Assembly (NCBI GenBank): GCA_904063045.1
Contig: CAJFCJ010000066.1
Location: 64,131-124,453 of the forward strand
Reading direction: 5' to 3'
Length of the DNA: 60,323 nucleotides
Origin: Dimorphilus gyrociliatus
Lineage: Eukaryota > Animalia > Annelida
Shown in pieces: positions 4,745 to 60,323 of this stretch. The translations under genes and the position numbers were made by a program. Positions within the stretch are counted from its first letter, which is position 1. Every line of letters begins with the position of its first letter. The notes under the pieces were generated by a model. The model searched no databases and was not told the DNA's origin. It saw only the letters and a program-made list of their open reading frames with translations.

Positions 4745-5025
4745 CTAATACGGATGCGACAGAAAAACGTCCACAAATGAGTGCTTTTACCCTAACCCTA
4801 ATAGTTGATCTTAGCGAGAACATGAATCTTAGTCTACATAACATGTGTGAAGGACTTGATAATTCATCAAAAAGTTTTTCAGTTGTAAGAAATGCACTGA
4901 AAAAGATACTTTTAGTGAATGCATTTCCAGGTCATATGCTCTGTCAAAAGAAAAAAATGAAAGGTGAATTGTTCAGTTTACTTTCAATTGTAGGTATGGA
5001 ATGTGAGGCAAGCAGTTTTTAAAAA

Positions 5026-6660
5026 TTAAAAACATATTTTTTTAACAAACCAAATAGTTAATAAGAATATGATGAGTATAATTGTAAATAAATCTATATT
5101 ATAGAGTTTATAGGCTGGCATATCTATTGCAGAATGTCTTAAATGGTTGCCACCAAACTTTAAAATGTGCTCAATCCAATATACAGCTTTTTCCAAAGGT
5201 TTTGGTTTTTGAGAATTGAGAAGAGAGGAAACTCTTCTTGCTGATTCTGAATAGGATTTTACTTTTAACATTTTAAAAATATACTCATTAAGGGATGATA
5301 CACCCTTTGTATGGAATGGTAAAATTTCTAAAGCGCCGTGTCTTTTAAAACGGACTGAGTTGTCCATACTATCAGCAGGTAGAGGTAGGACTAAAACTGG
5401 AGTACTGTGATACATTGCCTCGTAAACGGAATTTAAACCACCATGAGATATAAGTAGAACACAATTTTCTTTAGAAAGAAGATAAACTTGAGGAATCCAT
5501 TTGAAGATATGAATATTTGAATATTCTTTATCCAACTGACACTTTAATGACCAAATCCAGTGGATATCTTTAAAATTTTTAAGAATATTACTTATTTTTT
5601 CTAACAAGGTAGGATGGTGGCAAAAGTCTAAAGCGCTTCCAAAGGCGATAATACCAAATCTGTGAGTAGTTATATTAATTTAAGAGAGATAAGTAAATAT
5701 ACAACCATTTTGTTACCTTTTGATGGTAATTTCATGGAATTTTTGGTGAATATTTGTATCATCTACTGGCTGAGATGCTAAAATCCCACCAACTTGTACT
5801 ATGTTTGGTGTTAAAGGACGTGGAAATTCAAAAATATAGTCCGAATTCACAAGGAATAGTTGGGCATCTTTTCGAATTTCAGATATACTTTTACCTGGAG
5901 AAATTTTCATTTCCACTTTTAAATCTTCAAAAATCCTATCCAAATTATCCAGAACAACTGTTAAGTGGATATTTGAAATGATATTTCTCATTCTATCAAT
6001 AATTGTCATCTTATCAGTTAAAGAACTCAAAAAGGTTGGAACCCATGACACTGGTCCAGGTATGGCTGCTTGGGAATATGTTATATAGGACGAACATTCG
6101 TACATGACGAATGGTTTCTTATATTTTTCAACTAATAGGAAACCACAAAAGAAATATTGATCAATAACAATTAGGTCAAATTTTTTGAGTCGTTCCTCAA
6201 CTGAACAATCCGACAACATTGTTCGGCAATCTTCGATAAAAGCATCCCAAACAACTTTATACAACTTATCCATTTTTATATAAGATATGTTCTGATATAA
6301 CGAATCAATTGAACTATTTCTGATAGCTTCCCCAACCAATTCAACATGCTCTGGGGAAACTGGGGAAGATATCTCAAAAAGTGAAATATTACCAAGATTG
6401 TCCAGGCGAACAGTTCCTTGTTTTGAAATGCTAACTTGATGTCCGGATTTAATTAATCCTTTTCCAAGAGCAATAAGATTATCTGCATGACTCTTTGTTG
6501 AATATTTTGTTACTGGTGGTGTTAATAACAACAGATTTGAACTTAAACTTGAAGTTATCCATTGGCTTAGAAGTAAAATTCGAATAAGCATTTTTCCTTC
6601 TTTTTCTTGTTGAATACTGGTTGCTTCTTTATCAGAGAGACTACTATCAGTAATTGTCAT
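5026..6660 (-). CDS. UDP-glucuronosyl/glycosyltransferase (GT1, UGT), 2 exons, 525 aa
   Basis: Exons 6660-5717 and 5659-5026, with a 57-nt GT-AG phase-2 intron joining ...ITIKR|FGIIAFGS. Signature WIPQVYLL...HGGLNSVYEAMYHSTPVLVLPLPADSMDN, N-terminal SH, C-terminal TM helix. Confidence 0.93.
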
Positions 6661-35805: not shown

Positions 35806-37734
35806 ATGGCTGCCAGTAGATATTTTATCCAAGAACAAAGTCTTCAATGTTCCTTGTGTTCGGAATCTTGGGTAGATAAAGATCATAGAGTACTTCCTTG
35901 TCAACACACATTCTGCCTGCAGTGTTTGCTGGAACAAAACTTTGCGAAAAACACATTTATTGCTAAAACAGGAATAAAATGTCCCGATTGCGAAGAATTT
36001 CATGAATTAAACAAGGAGATGGTAAGGACATCATTACCTAAAAACTATTTCGCCAATTCTTTAAATAGAGCACTACTGGATGAAAAACTTTGCGAAAAAC
36101 ATGAACAACTCTCTACTTTGTTTTGTATAAGTCACAATATTGAAAATCTATGCAGTATTTGCTTTGACAATGATCATTCGCAATGTCAAGTTTCAACGAT
36201 GAATAGACAATTGAAAAATAAGGAATTGATAAAGTCTCATTTGAATATTGAAGAGAATAATCAAAAAGAACTTTTAAGTGAAATTGAACAAATTGAAAAA
36301 GATTATTTGTTAAAAATTCAAAATGATTTCAAAATGATTAGGCAAGTTTCTAAAAAATTAAGAAAGCAGAGAGAGGATTCTTTAATGAATCTTTCAAAAG
36401 ATATCACCAAACAGAAGAATTTATTGGAATATTTAGAAAATTTTTCAAAAAACAAACTACAATTAACAATACTTAAAAATCCAAAAGTTGAATATCAACT
36501 AAAGGAAATAGATTACCAAAACTATATTAACAATGAATTTTCATTGACTTTGAACATATTAAATAATAACACTACAGATACAGATAAAGGTCATATTACT
36601 AAAATTCTACAAATAAATAATAATTTGAAGAAAGTCAATTTATCAAACAGTAGATGTGGTCAAGATTATTGGTCAACTATTTGTCGACTACTTGAAAAAT
36701 CATCTTACAGGCTGAAAGAAGTTAATTTTTCAGATTGTGATTTAACAGAGAAATTTTGTAAACCTATTGAAAAATTATTAGATGAGTGTTGCCAAATTGA
36801 ATTATTTAACATATCTGATAATGGACTAGGAACTGGAATTCAAAACATCTGCAATGGACTGGAAAAATCATCAAGTACGCTAAAGGAATTGAATTTTTCA
36901 GATTGTGATTTAACAGAGAAATTATGTAAACCTATTGAAAAATTATTAAATGAATGTTGCCAAATTGAATTATTTAACATATCTGATAATAGACTAGGAA
37001 CTGGAATTCAAAACATCTGCAATGGACTGGAAAAATCATCAAGTACGCTAAAGGAATTGAATTTTTCAGATTGTGATTTAACAGAGAAATTATGTAAACC
37101 TATTGAAAAATTATTAAATGAATGTTGCCAAATTGAATTATTTAACATATCTGATAATAGACTAGGAACTGGAATTCAAAACATCTGCAATGGACTGGAA
37201 AAATCATCAGCTACACTAAAAGAATTGAATTTTTCTAACTGCGATTTAAAAGGGGAAAATTGGGATTTTTTTGAAATTCAAATGAGAAAATTTTGTAATC
37301 TTGAAGTAATAAATTTAAAGAATAATAAAAAAATTGGAAATGGATTCTTGAGTATTTGTAGTGGTTTTGCCAACTCAGGGACGACTTTGAAGGAAATTAA
37401 TCTATCAAACTGTAACATTACTAAATCTTACTGCTCCTCTTTACAGATTCTTTTATCCTTATGTTCAAGTCTTGAAATAATTGACCTTTCATTAAATAGT
37501 TGTATGGGAAAAGGTTTGTCAGATATAATTAATTCTCTGAAAAGATCATCTAAAACTCTAAGGGAAATTTCACTTTCAAAGTGTAATATAACTGAAAAAA
37601 GGTGTAAAGAGATTAAAGATGTTTTGATGAAATTTGACAAATTAAATATAATTGATTTGTCATTTAATTTTCAAATTGGAAATGGTTTATTTCATATTCG
37701 CAGTCAGCTTTCGAATTCTGTAAGAATTATTTGA
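35806..37734 (+). CDS. Intronless RING-B-box-coiled-coil (TRIM-like)-LRR protein, 642 aa
   Basis: CSLC..VLPCQHTFCLQC..KCPDC (RING-HC), CEKHEQLSTLFCISH..LCSIC..DH (B-box2), a helical coiled coil, then about 12 RI-like LRRs. Confidence 0.9.
   Translation: MAASRYFIQEQSLQCSLCSESWVDKDHRVLPCQHTFCLQCLLEQNFAKNTFIAKTGIKCPDCEEFHELNKEMVRTSLPKNYFANSLNRALLDEKLCEKHEQLSTLFCISHNIENLCSICFDNDHSQCQVSTMNRQLKNKELIKSHLNIEENNQKELLSEIEQIEKDYLLKIQNDFKMIRQVSKKLRKQREDSLMNLSKDITKQKNLLEYLENFSKNKLQLTILKNPKVEYQLKEIDYQNYINNEFSLTLNILNNNTTDTDKGHITKILQINNNLKKVNLSNSRCGQDYWSTICRLLEKSSYRLKEVNFSDCDLTEKFCKPIEKLLDECCQIELFNISDNGLGTGIQNICNGLEKSSSTLKELNFSDCDLTEKLCKPIEKLLNECCQIELFNISDNRLGTGIQNICNGLEKSSSTLKELNFSDCDLTEKLCKPIEKLLNECCQIELFNISDNRLGTGIQNICNGLEKSSATLKELNFSNCDLKGENWDFFEIQMRKFCNLEVINLKNNKKIGNGFLSICSGFANSGTTLKEINLSNCNITKSYCSSLQILLSLCSSLEIIDLSLNSCMGKGLSDIINSLKRSSKTLREISLSKCNITEKRCKEIKDVLMKFDKLNIIDLSFNFQIGNGLFHIRSQLSNSVRII
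36712..37236 (+). repeat. Three tandem 168-bp (56-aa, two-LRR) units inside the TRIM-LRR CDS
   Basis: The aatttttc anchor recurs at 36724, 36892, 37060 and 37228. Units 2 and 3 are essentially identical. Confidence 0.95.
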
Positions 37735-38817
37735 CAGAGATGTCAATATCATTTTAGTTGATTATATAGATTATTATTTGAATGTGCATGAATTGCTATG
37801 TTGATGCAATCATCTTGCTTAAGATTAAGAGCAAGGCTTTCTACGAAGAAACACCTCACTTGTTGGAAAAATATCTTCAATGCAGACAATCATTAATTGA
37901 GTTCTAGTTCAAGACCATTCAATCACTTTCCGTTTCTACTGATAAGAATAGTGTCAATAAGATAAATCTACAATATGTATTCTTTGAAGAATAGTTAACT
38001 TTTCATACACTAGATGGCGATAACTATAATAAATATTGATTTCAGTAAATTTAAATTGACTATAGTTAATTTTCAAATAATTTGGAAATATGCTCAGGGT
38101 TTGCTTAAAACTTGTAACAGTTAATTTTCAGAGGAAAAATACTGAATGTAGGCTGATATACCACGAATTATAAGGTCATATCAGTCATTAGCAATATAAA
38201 TATTTTACTTTGCATTAGAAGAATGACAATACTTTATTCTTTTTACCTATTTAATTAAACTATTAACTAAAGAATAAAAATTTAATAACGAGTCATAAAA
38301 AGTCCAACTCGGCACATTTGCAATCTTTGCGAACCATTCCCCAAAATGACATTGAAATGCTTATCTTGCAATCATACATGTATTGGAAATCATTTAATGG
38401 ATTTTAAGATATTTAATTTATTTCTTTAATTAAAGTAGAAATGAGTGAAGGCTTGTGTGAATCTTGTAATATGATTACAAAGAAACCATGGATTGTAATA
38501 ATTTTATAGAGGACTCATTTGAAATGAATGAAGAAAAAAAAGCAGATCAAAATGAAAAATTCACACTTCTTAGAGAAAGCCGGAGAGGCAAGGATATTAA
38601 AAAATTAATAATTGTTTGTTGAAAAGTTGACTTGAATGTAAGTGTTGCCATCTATCGACAAATACTTGTTGAAAAACAAGAAGAAAGATAAAAGTTTAAT
38701 TTTGAAAAATTATTGAAAAATACAGTTATAAATAAAAATGCGATAGATTAATTATGAATTTATTATGATGTCATCATTTTTTTTAATCAAAAATTAAAGA
38801 TACCAAAGCTCAACATT

Positions 38818-39716
38818 TTAACTTTTTGACATTATAATAGTAAATGTGATATCTGGATAGGATTCCTCACAACATGCATAATGTTTTACATTACGTCTAC
38901 CAGTATTTTTAATAATTCTATATTTTCCATAGTAGTCTGCAAAGTCAATATTTTTCATATCATTGTAAAAGTTTACATCTATCTCATTTCCGTGATAAGT
39001 CCACGAAGCATATTTAAAATTGCAATGATATTCTCCTCTTTTCTTATCCAGTGGACATCTTACCTTTGAAAAATAGATGGAATGTAGATGATAAAAGACA
39101 TTCTAACCTCTTCTAACATACCGTTATTAGTTTTGGAGGAATGTACAAAATGTTTCCATTATGTTTAACAATTGCAGGAACATTGGCAAGATTAACATCT
39201 TTACGTGCCCTAGTAAAACATAAACAAGAATATATGAGAATTTTTATGATTATAGGTGAATGATCTATTACTGATTGTATAGAAAAATATCAGGACTCCA
39301 AATCTTATTGATTGGTAAATGTAGAGATGTGACTTTGTAATCTTCAACTGACCAACGTAATCTAAAGTCTTCCCAGGACTATGATTTTTATGAATATTAC
39401 TTATATTTTGACCGAATTTCTTATTTACAAATTAATACTTTACCATTCTTTGCCAAACATTAAAAGTTAAAAGTTCACCATCAACTTCAGTGACATCAGT
39501 TAAACTTAATCCTATAGAAACATTAACATTTTGAAAAGAGAAAATATCATAGTCTCCTAATAAATTATAAATTAATCTGGCATTATCTTCATATTTCCTA
39601 GAAAACAAATTTCCAATGCAGAAGAAGATAGAAGAAAAAAGAAGAGAAACTTACACTGTATAGCATACTTGTAGAAGAAGCATAGAGATAAAAATTGATA
39701 AGAGTAGCACTCTCAT
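38818..39716 (-). CDS. AChBP: Soluble acetylcholine-binding protein-like (nAChR ligand-binding domain only), 5 exons, 218 aa, intact
   Basis: Exons 39716-39655, 39597-39444, 39378-39272, 39209-39122 and 39063-38818, all GT-AG with compatible phases. Signal peptide MRVLLLSIFISMLLLQVCYTV; loop D VWQ; WEDFRLRW; loop A IWSPDIFLYN; Cys-loop CPLDKKRGEYHC; loop B ASWTY; loop C HYACCEESYPDITF. A stop follows with no TM. Confidence 0.92.
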
Positions 39717-46280: not shown

Positions 46281-47274
46281 ACTTTGTATTGTAATTGTAG
46301 GAATTTCTGGTTCGTCACAACTGTAATCGTCCTTTCCAATCATTTACCAACTTGCCAAAGTGCTGGTCCAAATAGAACCTTTAAAGTTCGTCCACAAATA
46401 GTCTAACAAAGGCAATTTTGGTAGAAATTGATTAACAAAACACCAGTATTTCGTGCAAAGAATATGTATTGAGTAAAATGAGCTTCTAGTTCTAAACATT
46501 TGAAGACAAAGAAAAGTTCTAAATATGGTCATGTTTTTATTGTTTTCCTCTTCTAAATACTAGTTGAACCTTTAAAGTTCGTCCACAAATAGTCTAACAA
46601 AGGCAATTTTGGTAGAAATTGATTAACAAAACACCAGTATTTCGTGCAAAGAATATGTATTGAGTAAAATGAGCTTCTAGTTCTAAACATTTGAAGACAA
46701 AGAAAAGTTCTAAATATGGTCATGTTTTTATTGTTTTCCTCTTCTAAATACTAGTTGAATTTCTCAGGTTGGAGAGTTGCATAAGATGTAACAATTTTAG
46801 TAGGACAAGTCCAACAATCAAGAAAACATGTAGATTGTATATTTGACCGTTTTTATATTCTACCTTAATAATGATATTGAATTGATTGAGTTAGTAAATT
46901 TAGCATCAGCATATAAGGAGGAAGGATATCTGAATAATGCATGTTAAGAAGAACAGTATTGTGTATACAATACTGTTGAATAGTGAATATAATCTAAACT
47001 TAGAATTGAAGCATAATTGATAATTAATTGAACTAGTTTTAGTTCGAAATCATAAATTTATGGATTAATAAATTGTAATATTAATGCTATGTTGCAAATA
47101 GCAAATATTCTTTATATAATTCAATAGGTTTTATTACTGCATAATGTGTATGCACTGCCCTATGCGAAACTAGGTCACTACTGCTTATCTTTATCAATGC
47201 TATCTGCATAGTACAATACTGGTTCAATACTACTTCTCTATTGTAGAATATAGCTGACGAATGTATGTGTACAA
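46281..47274 (+). repeat. ~1-kb direct repeat of 52801-53737 (also present inverted at ~54140-55080)
   Basis: Long near-identical stretches (gaacctttaaagttcgtccacaaatag..., ggttggagagttgcataagatg..., gctgacgaatgtatgtgtacaa). Confidence 0.92.
46375..46756 (+). repeat. Perfect 191-bp tandem duplication (2 copies)
   Basis: gaacctttaaag starts at 46375 and 46566. ctaaatactagttgaa occurs at 46553 and 46744. Confidence 0.95.
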
Positions 47275-47444
47275 CTAAAAACTCATTTATTGCATTAAGA
47301 ATAATTATTCTCCTATTCCTATTTTTTATTGATGAATAAAATTTTGTCCACACATTTCATAAAATTTCTTAGCTAAAATACAGATTTTGACAACTGATTA
47401 GATGCTGAATTAAGAGAATTTCAAAATGTTAAACATGATAAAAG

Positions 47445-47568
47445 TGCAAGATTTACTTCAATAAGTCAACAGATGCTTTAATACATCCCTGCAATCATGT
47501 TATCAATTGTAAAGAGTGCATTTCTAGTCTTCCAAACCAGAAATATCCATCATTTAGGGTATTTATTC
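47445..47568 (+). pseudogene. Degenerate IAP-type RING sequence
   Basis: CKIYFNKSTDALIHPCNHVINCKECISSLPNQKYPSFRVFI aligns with the two small RING genes, but several Zn ligands are lost. A partial copy lies at 40188-40274. Confidence 0.75.
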
Positions 47569-48167
47569 CAGAATATGTGCTTATCAAAACAGATGTACAT
47601 GAATTGAATTCTATTAGATAAAAAAAATGTTTATCATATTTAGATTTATAAATTGTGAACTATCAACCTTTAAAAGGGTATATAAACCCAACAAAATTAA
47701 GGTTTATATATTCTTTAAAGGGTTAATAGTTCACAAATTTCAATGTTCACATAAATAAAAGTAACATTGGAAGACAAAGAAAAGTTGTAAATATAGTCTG
47801 TTTATTGTTTTCCTCTTCTAAATAATAATTGAATTTCACAGGTTGGACAGTTCCATAAGATGTAACAATTTTCTTACAGCAAGTCCAACAATCAAGAAAA
47901 CAAGTGGATTATATATTTGACCATTTTTGTATTCTACTTTGTGTAAAAAACTAGGAAGCATGTCTAAATAATCCATATTAATAGTATTGTGTATACAACA
48001 CTATTGAATAGTGATTTAAAATCTAAAATTCCAAATAAAACCATAATTAAAGTAATATCTTATTGTTGAGGAGTTCATCTGCTATATTTCTTCTCCTTTT
48101 ATTTTTCAAGAGATGTTATTGTTTCTATCATGAAGAAAGCAATCATGCTCAGTGTCTTCTTAACAGC

Positions 48168-51100
48168 TTAATGATGAAAAGATGATAGAAAGATATTTTT
48201 TTGTATTTTTCTGGTTGCTGGCTGTGATTTTCCTATTTCTTCTTTGTTAATCTTTTTATAGATGTCAATGTTACCTTTACACCATAAATAGAATGCTGCT
48301 GCACCTGCACTTGCCTCCTTGACTTCTTGCAGATTTAATTCACAAATTATTTGTTCAGCTCTGAGAATGATTGCTGGATGTACAGTTAAGATTTTAAGAG
48401 CTTTAATTTTCTTTAAAATAGAATAAGAGCATGCATATTTAATAAAAACTCGACATTCTTTCCATTCATCAGTTTGTCCTTCATCAATTGATAAAATCAA
48501 TAATGTTGATTTTATAACCAGATGTACAACAGCAGGTGGTTGATTATACTGATTTAATTCTGCAATACACTTTGCATCAAGTTTTAAAATCCTGTTTTGC
48601 AAACCACAAATTTTTTCTAAATTTGCTTTTAATTCATTAGCTTTTGATAAATCTTTAATTAATAAAGGATTTATTGGTTTAACAGAAGCTTTGTCTATAG
48701 CTACTTTTAACTTTTTATAATCTTTTTCTTCATATGCCTTTTTCAAATCTACAATATTTTTAATGATATTTTTAATAATTTCAGTATCTAGATGTGAAAT
48801 TTTAATTACCTGATGCCTTCTTTGCTACATCTTCCTGATCATTGTGTTGTTGCTGTGATTTCTCTTCCTTTTCATCATTTCTATTACCTGGCTTTCCTGT
48901 GGTTTCTTCTGCATTATTTACAATTTCTTTTTTACCTTTTTCATTTCCATTCTCCTTTAGGAAGAAATAATCATTTTACAAAAGAGAAAAAAACATTATT
49001 TACAAATATCTTACATTTATTTTAAAAGTTTTATCCTCTCCATCATCAGAGTCATCAGCTGGTAGAAATTCACTGATATAGATAACTTCTTCCATTTTTA
49101 ATGACCAATCTATTTCACCAATTTCTTCTATATTAGTAGCATTTTCAATTGTCTCAAATTGAACATTTGGCACATATTTCATTGTTTTAATAAAATCATT
49201 TTCATCAGATACTTCATTTTTAGAAATATCAATTGTTTGTGAAGCATTTATCTTGTCTATATTTTCATTTTTACTAATAGCTTGGCTATTATCAATTGCA
49301 GGTTTATCCAGTGTACTGTTAATTTCACTATTCCCTATTACAGGTTCAGCCAGTTCACTAGTGGTTTCACAATTCTCTATTGTAGCTTCCTCTGGTTCAC
49401 TGGCGATTTCACTATTCTCTATTGCAGGTTTAGCCATTTTCATAATTGGATTTTTAAAAATTTTATAAATTAAAATTTCAGTAAAAAATTTTGCATTTTT
49501 ATAAATTTTTGCTCTAATAACTAAATCTCCAAAATTTTCACCAGTGTCAATTTCACATTCCCATATATCATTAAAGAGGTCAAAATGAAAAATTTCATTG
49601 TCATTTACACGACAGGCAATCATTTCATCAGCTTTAAAACCTTCAATCTGTATTAATACTTTTTCATTTGAGTAGAGTTTTCTAAATGGTTGAAGAATTT
49701 TATGAGTTTCACTAATTCTCCATTTATCAGTAACAATTGGAAATTGAAATGAATTTGTATTAGATTCAATTGCATAAAAATAAGAATTATAGATCAATTC
49801 ATAATTTTTTCTGGAATTTAATTCCTTTGCTTCAATTTCAAGTTTATACATTCCTGGTAATGGAAAATTGATGTAGAATGTAACATCTTCATAACTATTT
49901 ACAAAGAATGAATACATAGATAAATCATGTCCTTCATTGTTTTCATCATACCATTTTAATTCAATTTTAAATTGACATGATATCTTTTTAAATATCTTAA
50001 AATGTATATTTTTAGAACATTCTTGATAAGATTGGAAATTATCTTCCATCCTTAATTTTAACCTAAAGAAATGTGTTTGTTTGCCAATAGTTCTACTTCC
50101 ATTATCTGGAAATATTAAAGTATAATTTGCTTTTTCCTCACTTTTAACAATATATGAAGTAATTGTAGGCAAACTTTTTTCTGATAATTTTTCAAAAAAT
50201 TTAAAACATAAACAATTACAATGATATTCAATTTTTCGATTTTGTCCACAAATATTTATACCGTATTCTCCTTCAGATGGAAAAAAGAATTTTATAAGTC
50301 CTAGACCATTTTCAAATGTCGAGATGCAATATTGTTGCAGAAAACAAGAAGAATACTTAATACTTGTAATTTCTACAGAAAACTCATATTCATTATCATC
50401 TCCATTAAAATGAATCTCTGTATAATTTTTATTTGATGAAGTATACATTCCAAGTACAGGGAACATATTTGTAAAATTGCATTTTCTAGCTCTATAATTT
50501 GGTCCAAGTTCAGATAGATTTGTGTTTGGAAATGGAGGAATATATATATTATCTCTTTTTGTGTATTTAATAATGTAGTCAGTACACCATTTATAGTCAG
50601 GTTCTTTAAGTTTAATATCATCTTTGGACACCCAAAGTCTTAGCTTATATTTAGCTGTTTGAGGTAATCTCAGCCTAATGATTAGAAGGTTTTTTGATTT
50701 GTTTTGAAATATGGTTATATATAAACTTGGATCTATAGTTTCTTTTTTTATATCTTGTACTAGACCAGTATCTAAAACAGTCTCATCACTAATAAAAATA
50801 GTATAAGCAAATATTACAGGGAATTCTTTGTCTGTTCCAATAAGAATTTCATTCCTGGATTGTTCAGCAAAAACAGTACACTTGGGATGAGAAATAATTC
50901 CAAGCTTATGCTCAAAAAATGCAGGTCTTAAATATGCCATTTCCTCAAATTCTTGTAAAGTTACTGTTCTAGCTAAAAGCTGATGTTTACTCAAAACTGG
51001 AATATGCTTGTAAATGAATTCCTCTGGATTGGGCAAAAAATATCCATTATCATATTGATATTTTTTTTGACTTGTAAGATTTTTCTTTTTGAAGAAAAAC

Positions 51101-55945: not shown

Positions 55946-58900
55946 ATGGGAATTTGTTTCTCAAAACAAAATGTTATCATTCCTGCAATATATAATCCAG
56001 GTTATATTTAAATTTTTAAATTCAAATTAACTTTAATCTTGTTATTTAAAAAAAAAAGATATTGAAAAACAACTCACTGATGTTCATAATGCTCTTAAAG
56101 GAGAGTTTATGAGTATGGGTTTTCCAACTAATGTTACTCTACGTATAGCAAATACAGAATGGTATGAATTGGTTAAATACAGACAAATTGCAAACCTCCT
56201 CACATTATTTTTCCTAATCCAATTTCCAAAGAATGGATAGAAGAAAATTATGATTTTCGCCATGTTGATAAATTTGTCATGAAAAAAATGAACAAATCAT
56301 TTTTAAACAAAACACCACAACAAGTTGCAATTTTTTTAATTAAGGATTTCAATGATGAAATGTTAAGAGCTCGAGCTTTATTCCGTTGGTTAGCTTCAAT
56401 CAATCTAGATAAAATAAATTATGATAAGTTTGGAGCAATCAAAATGAGATATACTCTATATAGGTTAAAACAAAACAATATATCCTACGGTAAAGTGTTA
56501 AAAATTCTTTGCAGGTATGCATAAAAAGAAAACCTTATAAAATAACTTTTTAAATGTACTCAAATGATTTTTGTTTTCAAATAGTTTTGTAAATATTTAC
56601 TGTGAAGAAGTCTCTGGTTGGGCTAAACATGCAAATTATGAAATTGGAGAGAAAATAAATTTAAATGATAAGAATTTTTGGAATATTATTAGAATAAATG
56701 GTTTCTGGTATCTTTGTGATGCTAATTTTGGAAGTCACAAAATTTTTCAAGGGGAAAAAAAATATTCATTACTCCAGTTTTTTCTTCAAAAGAAAAATCT
56801 TACAAGTCAAAAAAAATATCAATATGATATGGATATTTTTTGCCCAATCCAGAGGAATTCATTTACAAGCATATTCAGTTTTGAGTAAACATCAGCTTTT
56901 AGCTAGAACAGTAACTTTACAAGAATTTGAGGAAATGGCATATTTAAGACCTGCATTTTTTGAGCATAAGCTTGGAATTATTTCTCATCCCAAGTGTACT
57001 GTTTTTGCTGAACAATCCAGGAATGAAATTCTTATTGGAACAGACAAAGAATTCCCTGTAATATTTGCTTATACTATTTTTATTAGTGATGAGACTGTTT
57101 TAGATACTGGTCTAGTACAAGATATAAAAAAAGAAACTATAGATCCAAGTTTATATATAACCATATTTCAAACAAATCAAAAACCTTCTAATCATTAGGC
57201 TGAGATTACCTCAACAGCTAAATATAAGCTAAGACTTTGGGTGTCCAAAGATGATATTAAACTTAAAGAACCTGACTATAAATGGTGTACTGACTACATT
57301 ATTAAATACACAAAAAGAGATAATATATATATTCCTCCATTTCCAAACACAAATCTATCTGAACTTGGACCAAATTAATAGAGCTAGAAAATGCAATTTT
57401 ACAAATATGTTCCCTGTACTTGGAATGTATACTTCATCAAAAATAAAATTATACAGAGATTCATTTTAATGGAGATGATAATGAATATGAGTTTTCTGTA
57501 GAAATTACAAGTATTAAGTATTCTTCTTGTTTTCTGCAACAATATTGCATCTCGACATTTGAAAATGGTCTAGGACTTATAAAATTCTTTTTTCCATCTG
57601 AAGGAGAATACGGTATAAATATTTGTGGACAAAATCGAAAAAATTGAATTCATTGTAATTGTTTATGTTTTAAATTTTTTGAAAAATTATCAGAAAAAAG
57701 TTTGCCTACAATTACTTCATATATTGTTAAAAGTGAGGAAAAAGCAAATTATACTTTAATATTTCCAGATAATGGAAGTAGAACTATTGGCAAACAAACA
57801 CATTTCTTTAGGTTAAAATTAAGGATGGAAGATAATTTCCAATCTTATCAAGAATGTTCTAAAAATATACATTTTAAGATATTTAAAAAGATATCATGTC
57901 AATTTAAAATTGAATTAAAATGGTATGATGAAAACAATGAAGGACATGATTTATCTATGTATTCATTCTTTGTAAATAGTTATGAAGATGTTACATTCTA
58001 CATCAATTTTCCATTACCAGGAATGTATAAACTTGAAATTGAAGCAAAGGAATTAAATTCCAGAAAAAATTATGAATTGATCTATAATTCTTATTTTTAT
58101 GCAATTGAATCTAATACAAATTCATTTCAATTTCCAATTGTTACTGATAAATGGAGAATTAGTGAAACTCATAAAATTCTTCAACCATTTAGAAAACTCT
58201 ACTCAAATGAAAAAGTATTAATACAGATTGAAGGTTTTAAAGCTGATGAAATGATTGCCTGTCGTGTAAATGACAATGAAATTTTTCATTTTGACCTCTT
58301 TAATGATATATGGGAATGTGAAATTGACACTGGTGAAAATTTTGGAGATTTAGTTATTAGAGCAAAAATTTATAAAAAGCAAAATTTTTTACTGAAATTT
58401 TAATTTATAAAATTTTTAAAAATCCAATTATGAAAATGGCTAAACCTGCAATAGAGAATAGTGAAATCGCCAGTGAACAGAGGAAGCTACAATAGAGAAT
58501 TGTGAAACCACTAGTGAACTGGCTGAACCTGTAATAGGGAATAGTGAAATTAACAGTACACTGGATAAACCTGCAATTGATAATAGCCAAGCTATTAGTA
58601 AAAATGAAAAATTAGAACATAAATGCTTCACAAACAATTGATATTTCTAAAATGAAGTATCTGATGAAAATGATTTTATTAAAACAATGAAATATGTGCC
58701 AAATGTTCAATTTGAGACAATTGAAAATGCTACTAATATAGAAGAAATTGGTGAAATAGATTGGTCATTAAAAATGGAAGAAGTTATCTATATCAGTGAA
58801 TTTCTACCAGCTGATGACTCTGATGATGGAGAGGATAAAACTTTTAAATAAATGTAAGATATTTGTAAATAATGTTTTTTTCTCTTTTGTAAAATGATTA

Positions 58901-59715
58901 TTTCTTCCTAAAGGAGAATGGAAATGAAAAGGTAAAAAAGAAATTGTAAATAATGCAGAAGAAACCACAGGAAAGCCAGGTAATAGAAATGATGAAAAGG
59001 AAGAGAAATCACAGCAACAACAACAATGATCAGGAAGATGTAGCAAAGAAGGCATCAGGTAATTAAAATTTCACATCTAGATACTGAAATTATTAAAATA
59101 TCATTAAAAAATTGTAGATTTGAAAAAGGCATATGAAGAAAAAGATTATAAAAAGTTAAAAGTAGCTATAGACAAAGCTTCTGTTAAACCAATAAATCCT
59201 TTATTAATTAAAGATTTATCAAAAGCTAATGAATTAAAAGCAAATTTAGAAAAAATTTGTGGTTTGCAAAACAGGATTTTAAAACTTGATGCAAATGTAT
59301 TGCAGAATTAAATCAGTATAATCAACCACCTGCTGTTGTACATCTGGTTATAAAATCAACATTATTGATTTTATCAATTGATGAAGGACAAACTGATGAA
59401 TGGAAAGAATGTCAAGTTTTTATTAAATATGCATGCTCTTATTCTATTTTAAAGAAAATTAAAGCTCTTAAAATCTTAACTGTAGATCCAGCAATCATTC
59501 TCAGAGCTGAACAAATAATTTGTGAATTAAATCTGCAAGAAGTCAAGGAGGCAAGTGCAGGTGCAGCAGCATTCTATTTATGGTGTAAAGGTAACATTGA
59601 CATCTATAAAAAGATTAACAAAGAAGAAATAGGAAAATCACAGCCAGCAACCAGAAAAATACAAAAAAATACTTTCTATCATCTTTTCATCATTAAGCTG
59701 TTAAGAAGACACTGA
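55946..59715 (+). pseudogene. Inverted copy of the hillarin-like gene, with many 1-nt indels
   Basis: It is the reverse complement of 48168-51931. The ORF is split into many pieces (56279, 56571, 56698, 57251, 57702, 59120, 59365), mostly at homopolymers. Confidence 0.85.
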
Positions 59716-60323
59716 GCATGATTGCTTTCTTCATGATAGAAACAATAACATCTCTTGAAAAATAAAAGGAGAAGAAATATACAGCAGATGAACTCCTCAA
59801 CAATAAGATATTACTTTAATTATGGTTTTATTTGGAATTTTAAATTTTAAATCACTATTCATAGTGTTGTATACACAATACTATTAATATGGATTATTTA
59901 GACATGCTTCCTAGTTTTTTACACAAAGTAGAATACAAAAGGTCAAATATATAATCCACTTGTTTTCTTGATTGTTGGACTTGCTGTAAGAAAATTGTTA
60001 CATCTTATGGAACTGTCCAACCTGTGAAATTCAATTATTATTTAGAAGAGGAAAACAATAAACAGACTATATTTACAACTTTTCTTTGTCTTCCAATGTT
60101 ACTTTTATTTATGTGAACATTGAAATTTGTGAACTATTAACCCTTTAAAGAATATATAAACCTTAATTTTGTTGGGTTTATATACCCTTTTTAAAGGTTG
60201 ATAGTTCACAATTTATAAATCTAAATATGATAAACATTTTTTTTATCTAATAGAATTCAATTCATGTACATCTGTTTTGATAAGCACATATTCTGGAATA
60301 AATACCCTAAATGATGGATATTT

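Follow-up and report, generated by a model that had tools for sequence, protein, structure and literature searches.

Structural studies of the binding sites of nicotinic receptors use acetylcholine-binding proteins (AChBPs) as their standard surrogates. Little is known of what these proteins do in nature and how widely they occur among animals; their function has been studied in a few molluscs, in a single annelid (Capitella) and for one candidate from a spider. The annelid protein, from Capitella teleta (PDB 4AFG; McCormack et al. 2010, as cited in PMC3423370), is secreted, consists of the ligand-binding domain (LBD) only, is ∼220–230 aa long and carries vicinal cysteines in loop C, and the molluscan AChBPs of Aplysia californica and Lymnaea stagnalis (PDB 2BYN, 2WN9) have the LBD fold, end after strand beta10, contain an aromatic cage and lack FPFD. 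Nicotinic alpha subunits differ in having TM1–TM4 (PF02932), a 13-residue Cys-loop and FPFD, all of which are absent from the protein described here. This protein comes from Dimorphilus gyrociliatus, a miniaturised marine annelid that otherwise shed genes, and its gene lies in a 60,323-nt stretch of contig C66 which was analysed as a whole and is called the window below. It shares with the Capitella AChBP the annelid origin, the LBD-only architecture and the loop-C vicinal cysteines, and with the molluscan AChBPs the fold, the end after beta10, the aromatic cage and the absence of FPFD. The locus is a real, intact gene for an AChBP-type LBD protein, already public but unnamed, and it is probably a working gene for a secreted, channel-less protein.

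We rebuilt the gene model from the raw window sequence. The gene spans 39716–38818 on the minus strand, which corresponds to C66:102948–103846, and has five exons and four introns of 57–65 nt (Table 1); all four introns are GT..AG, and the exons join in consistent phase into a 657-nt CDS that has one terminal TAA and gives a product of 218 aa. Thus the first-pass annotation, which described a five-exon, 218-aa LBD gene ending just past loop C, had the structure right. It also called the gene hidden and missed, which was mistaken, as the model is identical, letter for letter, to the public protein DgyrCDS14710 (P0151; 218 aa, GenBank/UniProt), which carries no functional name in public annotation; the gene is invisible to a simple list of open reading frames only because introns interrupt it. 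The introns fit the median of 66 bp published for this 73.8-Mb genome (PMC7854359), whose annotation drew on AUGUSTUS together with protein alignments and PASA transcripts, so that ab initio, protein and transcript evidence are mixed (PMC7854359). Neither the gene id nor ‘acetylcholine’ was found in the supplement of the genome paper (PMC7854359). The model was searched exon by exon, and whole-protein searches used the public DgyrCDS14710, identical to the local exon join. Exon 2 by itself has no Pfam match and falls within the whole-protein PF02931 match, and exon 5 alone matches PF02931 at 1e-9 and, in the PDB, alpha7/AChBP chimeras, Aplysia AChBP and alpha7, alpha9 and alpha4 subunits at ∼1e-12. 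The possible polyadenylation hexamers downstream of the stop codon are weak evidence, as the AT-rich window (G+C ∼27%) has ∼3.7 such hexamers per kb on each strand.

Table 1. Features of the AChBP-like locus, its neighbours in the window and its relatives elsewhere in the Dimorphilus gyrociliatus genome. Plain coordinates are window positions; C numbers denote contigs.
Feature	Position	Strand	Remarks
Exon 1	39655..39716	minus	ATG and hydrophobic, putative signal peptide MRVLLLSIFISMLLLQVCYT...; GTAAGT donor; equals N-terminus of DgyrCDS14710
Exon 2	39444..39597	minus	N-terminal helix, sequon N46-V-S, beta1-beta2, loop D Trp W69
Exon 3	39272..39378	minus	WxD / LRW motifs, loop A WSPDIFLYN (Y106); PF02931 alone at 7.4e-10
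Exon 4	39122..39209	minus	Loop E region (beta5-beta6); 88 nt, size common to four annotated paralogs
Exon 5	38818..39063	minus	Cys-loop C140-C151, loop B W158, loop F, loop C Y199/C201-C202/Y206, beta10, TAA 38820-38818
Possible polyadenylation hexamers	38759..38792	minus	ATTAAA +31, AATAAA +54 from stop
TATA-like TATATAA	39767..39773	minus	57 nt 5′ of ATG; pattern only
UDP-glucuronosyltransferase (PF00201)	5023-6492 (C66:69153-70622)	minus	E 5e-55; three TAA inside match
RING-finger and leucine-rich-repeat gene	35806-37734	plus	Single exon, 642 aa; near-identical internal repeats; convergent with AChBP-like gene
Family locus	C194		∼99% identical over ∼4.5 kb; gene differs by 1 base; allelic haplotig or very recent duplicate
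Family locus DgyrCDS14871 (P0152)	C93		87% aa identity to window gene; intact, annotated
Family locus DgyrCDS14572 (P0003)	C49		54% aa identity to window gene; intact, annotated
Family locus DgyrCDS7794 (P0010)	C9		46% aa identity to window gene; intact, annotated
Family loci	C78, C145, C58, C117		31–51% last-exon identity to window gene; last exon open
Family locus	C229		63% last-exon identity to window gene; last exon open; partly hidden by N
Decayed copy	C155:19024-19493		Exon 5 ∼74% aa, 85% DNA identity; two in-frame stops in exon 5; exons 3-4 lost
Decayed copies	C279:6606-6864 and C198:27654-27773		Fragmentary matches; truncated or degenerate

The whole protein matches PF02931 (Neur_chan_LBD) at 1.9e-36 and has no other Pfam match, PF02932 being absent. 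Its aromatic box is complete (W69 in loop D, Y106 in loop A, W158 in loop B, Y199 and Y206 in loop C, precursor numbering), loop C has the form Y199-x-C201-C202, and W69, Y106, W158, Y199, C201, C202 and Y206 each align to their counterpart in human alpha4, in agreement with the full box that had been read from the letters. W158, Y199, C201 and C202 are invariant and Y206 is nearly so in 24 channel-less relatives, and W69 and Y106 are kept in all four annotated Dimorphilus family members. The Cys-loop, C140-PLDKKRGEYH-C151, holds 10 residues between its cysteines and no FPFD, as had been noted, and in the alignment it is shorter than that of human alpha4 by a deletion of 3 residues. The TAA falls 16 residues past C201-C202, and there is no hydrophobic C-terminal tail. 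At the other end, the hydrophobic N-terminus MRVLLLSIFISMLLLQVCYT is typical of a signal sequence as judged by eye, and would take the product into the secretory pathway; the protein has a single N-x-S sequon (N46). An AlphaFold2 monomer model, made with the alignment of the 24 channel-less relatives as input, has a mean pLDDT of 94 and a pTM of 0.84. By Foldseek its top matches by TM-score are Aplysia AChBP chains (0.85–0.89, rmsd 1.6–1.9 Å, ∼26% identity), the best of them at 0.87–0.89 with rmsd 1.6–1.8 Å over ∼210 residues, and the extracellular domains of alpha4 and alpha7 are equal by E-value at 30–32% identity. The model thus predicts that the product folds as the 10-strand beta-sandwich of the nicotinic-receptor LBD and ends directly past beta10, without a membrane domain.

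The locus could instead be part of an ordinary nicotinic receptor subunit, with TM1–TM4 exons lying farther downstream or reached by splicing before the TAA. A weak donor-like GTTAA does overlap the stop codon, and in other species P0006 and P0009 join a short-Cys-loop LBD to membrane segments. However, a six-frame scan of the 77.9-Mb assembly with PF02932 gave ∼160 exon matches, and among the matches listed none is on contig C66. In tblastn with 102 ORFs from receptor loci of this genome, TM regions included, window matches fell within 38824–39602 only, and every alignment stopped where the LBD ends. Moreover, a custom TM-domain HMM made from 30 receptors reached a best E of 0.11 (9 bits) in the six window frames with filters off, and 1e-10 to 1e-57 on five control receptor loci, so neither strand of the window showed TM similarity. 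In the genuine receptors of Dimorphilus gyrociliatus a single open frame continues past loop C directly to TM1, as in ...YPDVTFYIVMRRRTLYYLFNIIFPC..., and the loci on C194, C93, C49, C9, C78, C145, C58, C117 and C229 have a stop 1–9 residues past the alignment end. The same stop position is kept in paralogs with only 31–55% last-exon identity, the introns of Dimorphilus gyrociliatus are ∼60 bp, the next gene downstream is convergent on the opposite strand ∼1.1 kb off, and the Cys-loop is without the FPFD coupling motif; all of this speaks against a receptor subunit, which is largely refuted and which we regard as very improbable. The channel-less reading of the first-pass annotation therefore survives the search for TM1–4, as tblastn and HMM found no membrane exons downstream and the PF02932 matches listed include none on C66.

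Relatives of the same architecture are found outside Dimorphilus. The library search with exon 5 returned several proteins of 212–243 aa in which the match reaches the C-terminus, two of them from Dimorphilus gyrociliatus. Among the best 150 library matches plus later matches, 29 full-length Met-start LBD proteins end 6–31 residues past the loop-C CC, the most frequent distance being the 16 residues of the Dimorphilus protein. Uncharacterised LBD-only proteins of this kind from Spiralia and other invertebrates, such as P0084 from Lineus and the tardigrade P0102, are 195–260 aa long, match PF02931 only and have a tail of mostly 16 residues and a variable Cys-loop; automatic naming has made most of them ‘receptor subunit alpha-like’, and they often come from metagenome contigs. 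In the ESM Atlas, LBD-only proteins form clusters of 64 and 214 members, for the most part from molluscs. The first-pass annotation had remarked that the Cys-loop is shorter than the 12–13 residues of AChBPs and nicotinic receptors, but the comparison does not support reading this as a special trait. The Cys-loop pair was not found by pattern search in 5 of the 29 channel-less relatives, and the others have 4–69 residues between the cysteines, often 8–10; in contrast, the loop has 13 residues in 42 of the 59 matches with >60 residues past the loop-C CC. Length variation among AChBPs is published, with 16 residues in a spider AChBP (PMC4569296), and the Biomphalaria AChBP has 12 residues between C126 and C139 (PMC3423370) versus 10 in the Dimorphilus protein. 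Because there is no pore to gate, a short Cys-loop is an expected relaxation; freed from the FPFD constraint, it may have shrunk here to 10 charged residues.

P0062 (252 aa) and P0145 (203 aa), both from metagenome contigs, are LBD-only and have Cys-loops expanded to 36 and 69 residues of highly acidic or charged low-complexity sequence. P0006 (427 aa, Logan), P0009 (Tubulanus polymorphus, 411 aa) and P0012 (282 aa) are close LBD relatives which run into hydrophobic membrane segments, their Cys-loop being short (10 or 8 residues) or its cysteines absent altogether; they resemble AChBP-like domains that have, unusually, been tethered to the membrane. P0197 (Bulinus truncatus, 356 aa) has PF02931 and PF02932, yet its NCBI name is ‘D-arabinose 1-dehydrogenase’, probably a mis-annotation. 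P0001 (Bursaphelenchus xylophilus, 7691 aa, with 30 loop B-loop F matches) was rejected as most likely a prediction in which receptor genes lying in tandem are fused.

The four annotated Dimorphilus proteins form one clade (SH-aLRT 97) in a tree of 58 LBDs made with IQ-TREE in ‘quick’ mode. The clade is placed among other LBD-only proteins, including Capitella P0050 (CAPTEDRAFT_200491), a hypothetical LBD-only protein distinct from the Capitella AChBP, on little support (85 and an open fork), and two Dimorphilus receptors which bear TM segments group away from it with chelicerate and vertebrate subunits; the tree is one without the characterised AChBPs of Lymnaea, Aplysia and Capitella, and its deep branches are without support. 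A profile search for named AChBPs had no characterised AChBP among its matches. Published trees likewise leave one versus several origins of channel-less proteins unresolved (PMC3423370).

The window gene belongs to a family within Dimorphilus gyrociliatus, found by searching the genome with DgyrCDS14710 and PF02931 and then reading the loci. In at least eight other loci the last exon stops at the same place, and three more copies are visibly decayed (Table 1). The open last exons all end directly past beta10 and have short, polar Cys-loops with 8–12 residues between the cysteines. The five-exon structure and its phases are common to the four annotated members, with exon sizes of ∼50–62, 145–160, 107–110, 88 and 237–246 nt. 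A heuristic exon-chain builder recovered the models annotated on C49 and C93 and, on C145, an intact one of 221 aa; for C78 the exon 4/5 junction is doubtful, and as C9 is annotated intact, the builder yielding no chain for C58, C117 and C9 is a limit of the heuristic and does not indicate broken genes. A 1424-aa ‘open frame’ at C229 was rejected as an artefact of an N run.

Whether selection maintains the window gene bears on a further alternative, that of a young non-functional duplicate, a pseudogene in waiting that is intact only through its youth. By Nei-Gojobori, dN/dS is 0.52 (dS 0.12) for the youngest pair, the window gene and C93, and 0.26–0.46 for older pairs of the four annotated members, in which dS is near saturation; on sequence comparison, selection on the family members thus lies below neutrality. 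For the window gene and C93, introns are 94.6% and exons 93.0% identical. Because introns are as conserved as exons and dN/dS is 0.52, constraint on this pair is weak, as would be expected of a young duplicate, and family members are spread over at least 12 contigs, many of them small and unplaced, with decay seen in the C155, C279 and C198 copies. These decayed copies also show what copies without selection look like. In contrast to them, the window gene has all five exons, eight splice sites, start and stop intact, with every ligand-contact aromatic and both disulfides kept and dN/dS still <1, and in its C93 copy, too, no splice site, disulfide or part of the aromatic cage has been lost. C155, with 85% DNA identity in exon 5, is already broken, whereas C93 and the window gene, 93% identical, are undamaged. 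Hence we consider a non-functional duplicate unlikely. Homology to C93 covers the gene, ∼100 bp upstream and 25 bp downstream only, so what was duplicated is the gene with its introns, and the family would appear to be lineage-specific and to evolve through duplication and decay.

For a working gene encoding a secreted, channel-less LBD protein, the steps from sequence to function can be set out by analogy with the molluscan and Capitella AChBPs. From these we infer secretion and assembly, the product being most likely a soluble homopentamer. The subunit interfaces would carry the aromatic cage of W69, Y106, W158, Y199 and Y206, closed by loop C with its vicinal disulfide. As for the ligand and the physiological role, we infer that the cage may bind acetylcholine or other quaternary-ammonium or nicotinic ligands through cation-pi contact with W158, the surrounding tyrosines and W69, and that the protein may act as an extracellular buffer or decoy. 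A secreted LBD-only protein could also have a non-cholinergic role, as a mineral binder like ACCBP, a binder of other small molecules or toxins, or a modulator of receptor co-assembly in the ER: ACCBP, an AChBP relative, acts in shell formation (PMC3423370), what AChBPs do physiologically is a matter of debate (PMC4569296), and the Dimorphilus family is diversifying quickly. But this copy has lost nothing of the aromatic cage or of the vicinal disulfide in loop C, which define nicotinic agonist sites, and Dimorphilus bears no shell, so a role of this kind seems quite unlikely to us. Within the reading as AChBP-like binder, about a dozen secreted proteins of this type, with intact, diverging and decaying copies in active turnover, might together form a diversifying set of extracellular binders for nicotinic-type small molecules or toxins from the environment or from microbes, instead of buffering acetylcholine at synapses, and could have arisen independently of molluscan AChBPs; we put this forward as a doubtful but conceivable extension.

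The gene was also said to lie in a defence cluster, with a hint of toxin sequestration, and this finds no support in the neighbourhood. The UDP-glucuronosyltransferase match is ∼32 kb off in a compact genome, and the three TAA within it may be introns or the mark of a broken gene. The convergent RING-finger and leucine-rich-repeat gene downstream is the one neighbour that matches Pfam; the closest large ORF on the upstream side has no match, and the paralogs are scattered over the contigs as described above. Elsewhere in the window, a ∼1-kb repeat is present in two opposite copies (47953–48992 and 58876–59912; also 47274–47536) that are 96–97% identical to C194:36290–37338; this repeat, near a hillarin-like gene, is probably a mobile element or a segmental repeat.

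Compared with known systems, DgyrCDS14710 is AChBP-type by architecture and no closer to the AChBPs by sequence than to human alpha4 and alpha7 LBDs. Human alpha4 (115.5 bits) and alpha7 (∼110 bits) are the best PDB sequence matches by HMMER, with 30–32% identity and a shared alpha-type YxCC loop C, and the crystallised AChBPs score ∼90–98 bits at 26% identity. The Capitella AChBP is distant, matching at E 1.8e-24 over residues 45–214 with 89.8 bits, below the human alpha4 score, and the molluscan AChBPs differ likewise, with ∼26% identity by Foldseek. Against the molluscan AChBPs, a multi-copy family on several contigs is a Dimorphilus feature. Known concepts are unchanged, the gene being already in the public protein set and just unnamed. 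The Dimorphilus family is further support for a wide occurrence of channel-less LBD proteins in Spiralia, and it provides a second annelid with AChBP-type proteins, here multi-copy and fast-evolving with Cys-loops from 10 down to 8 residues, and thus a natural variety for structural and pharmacological work.
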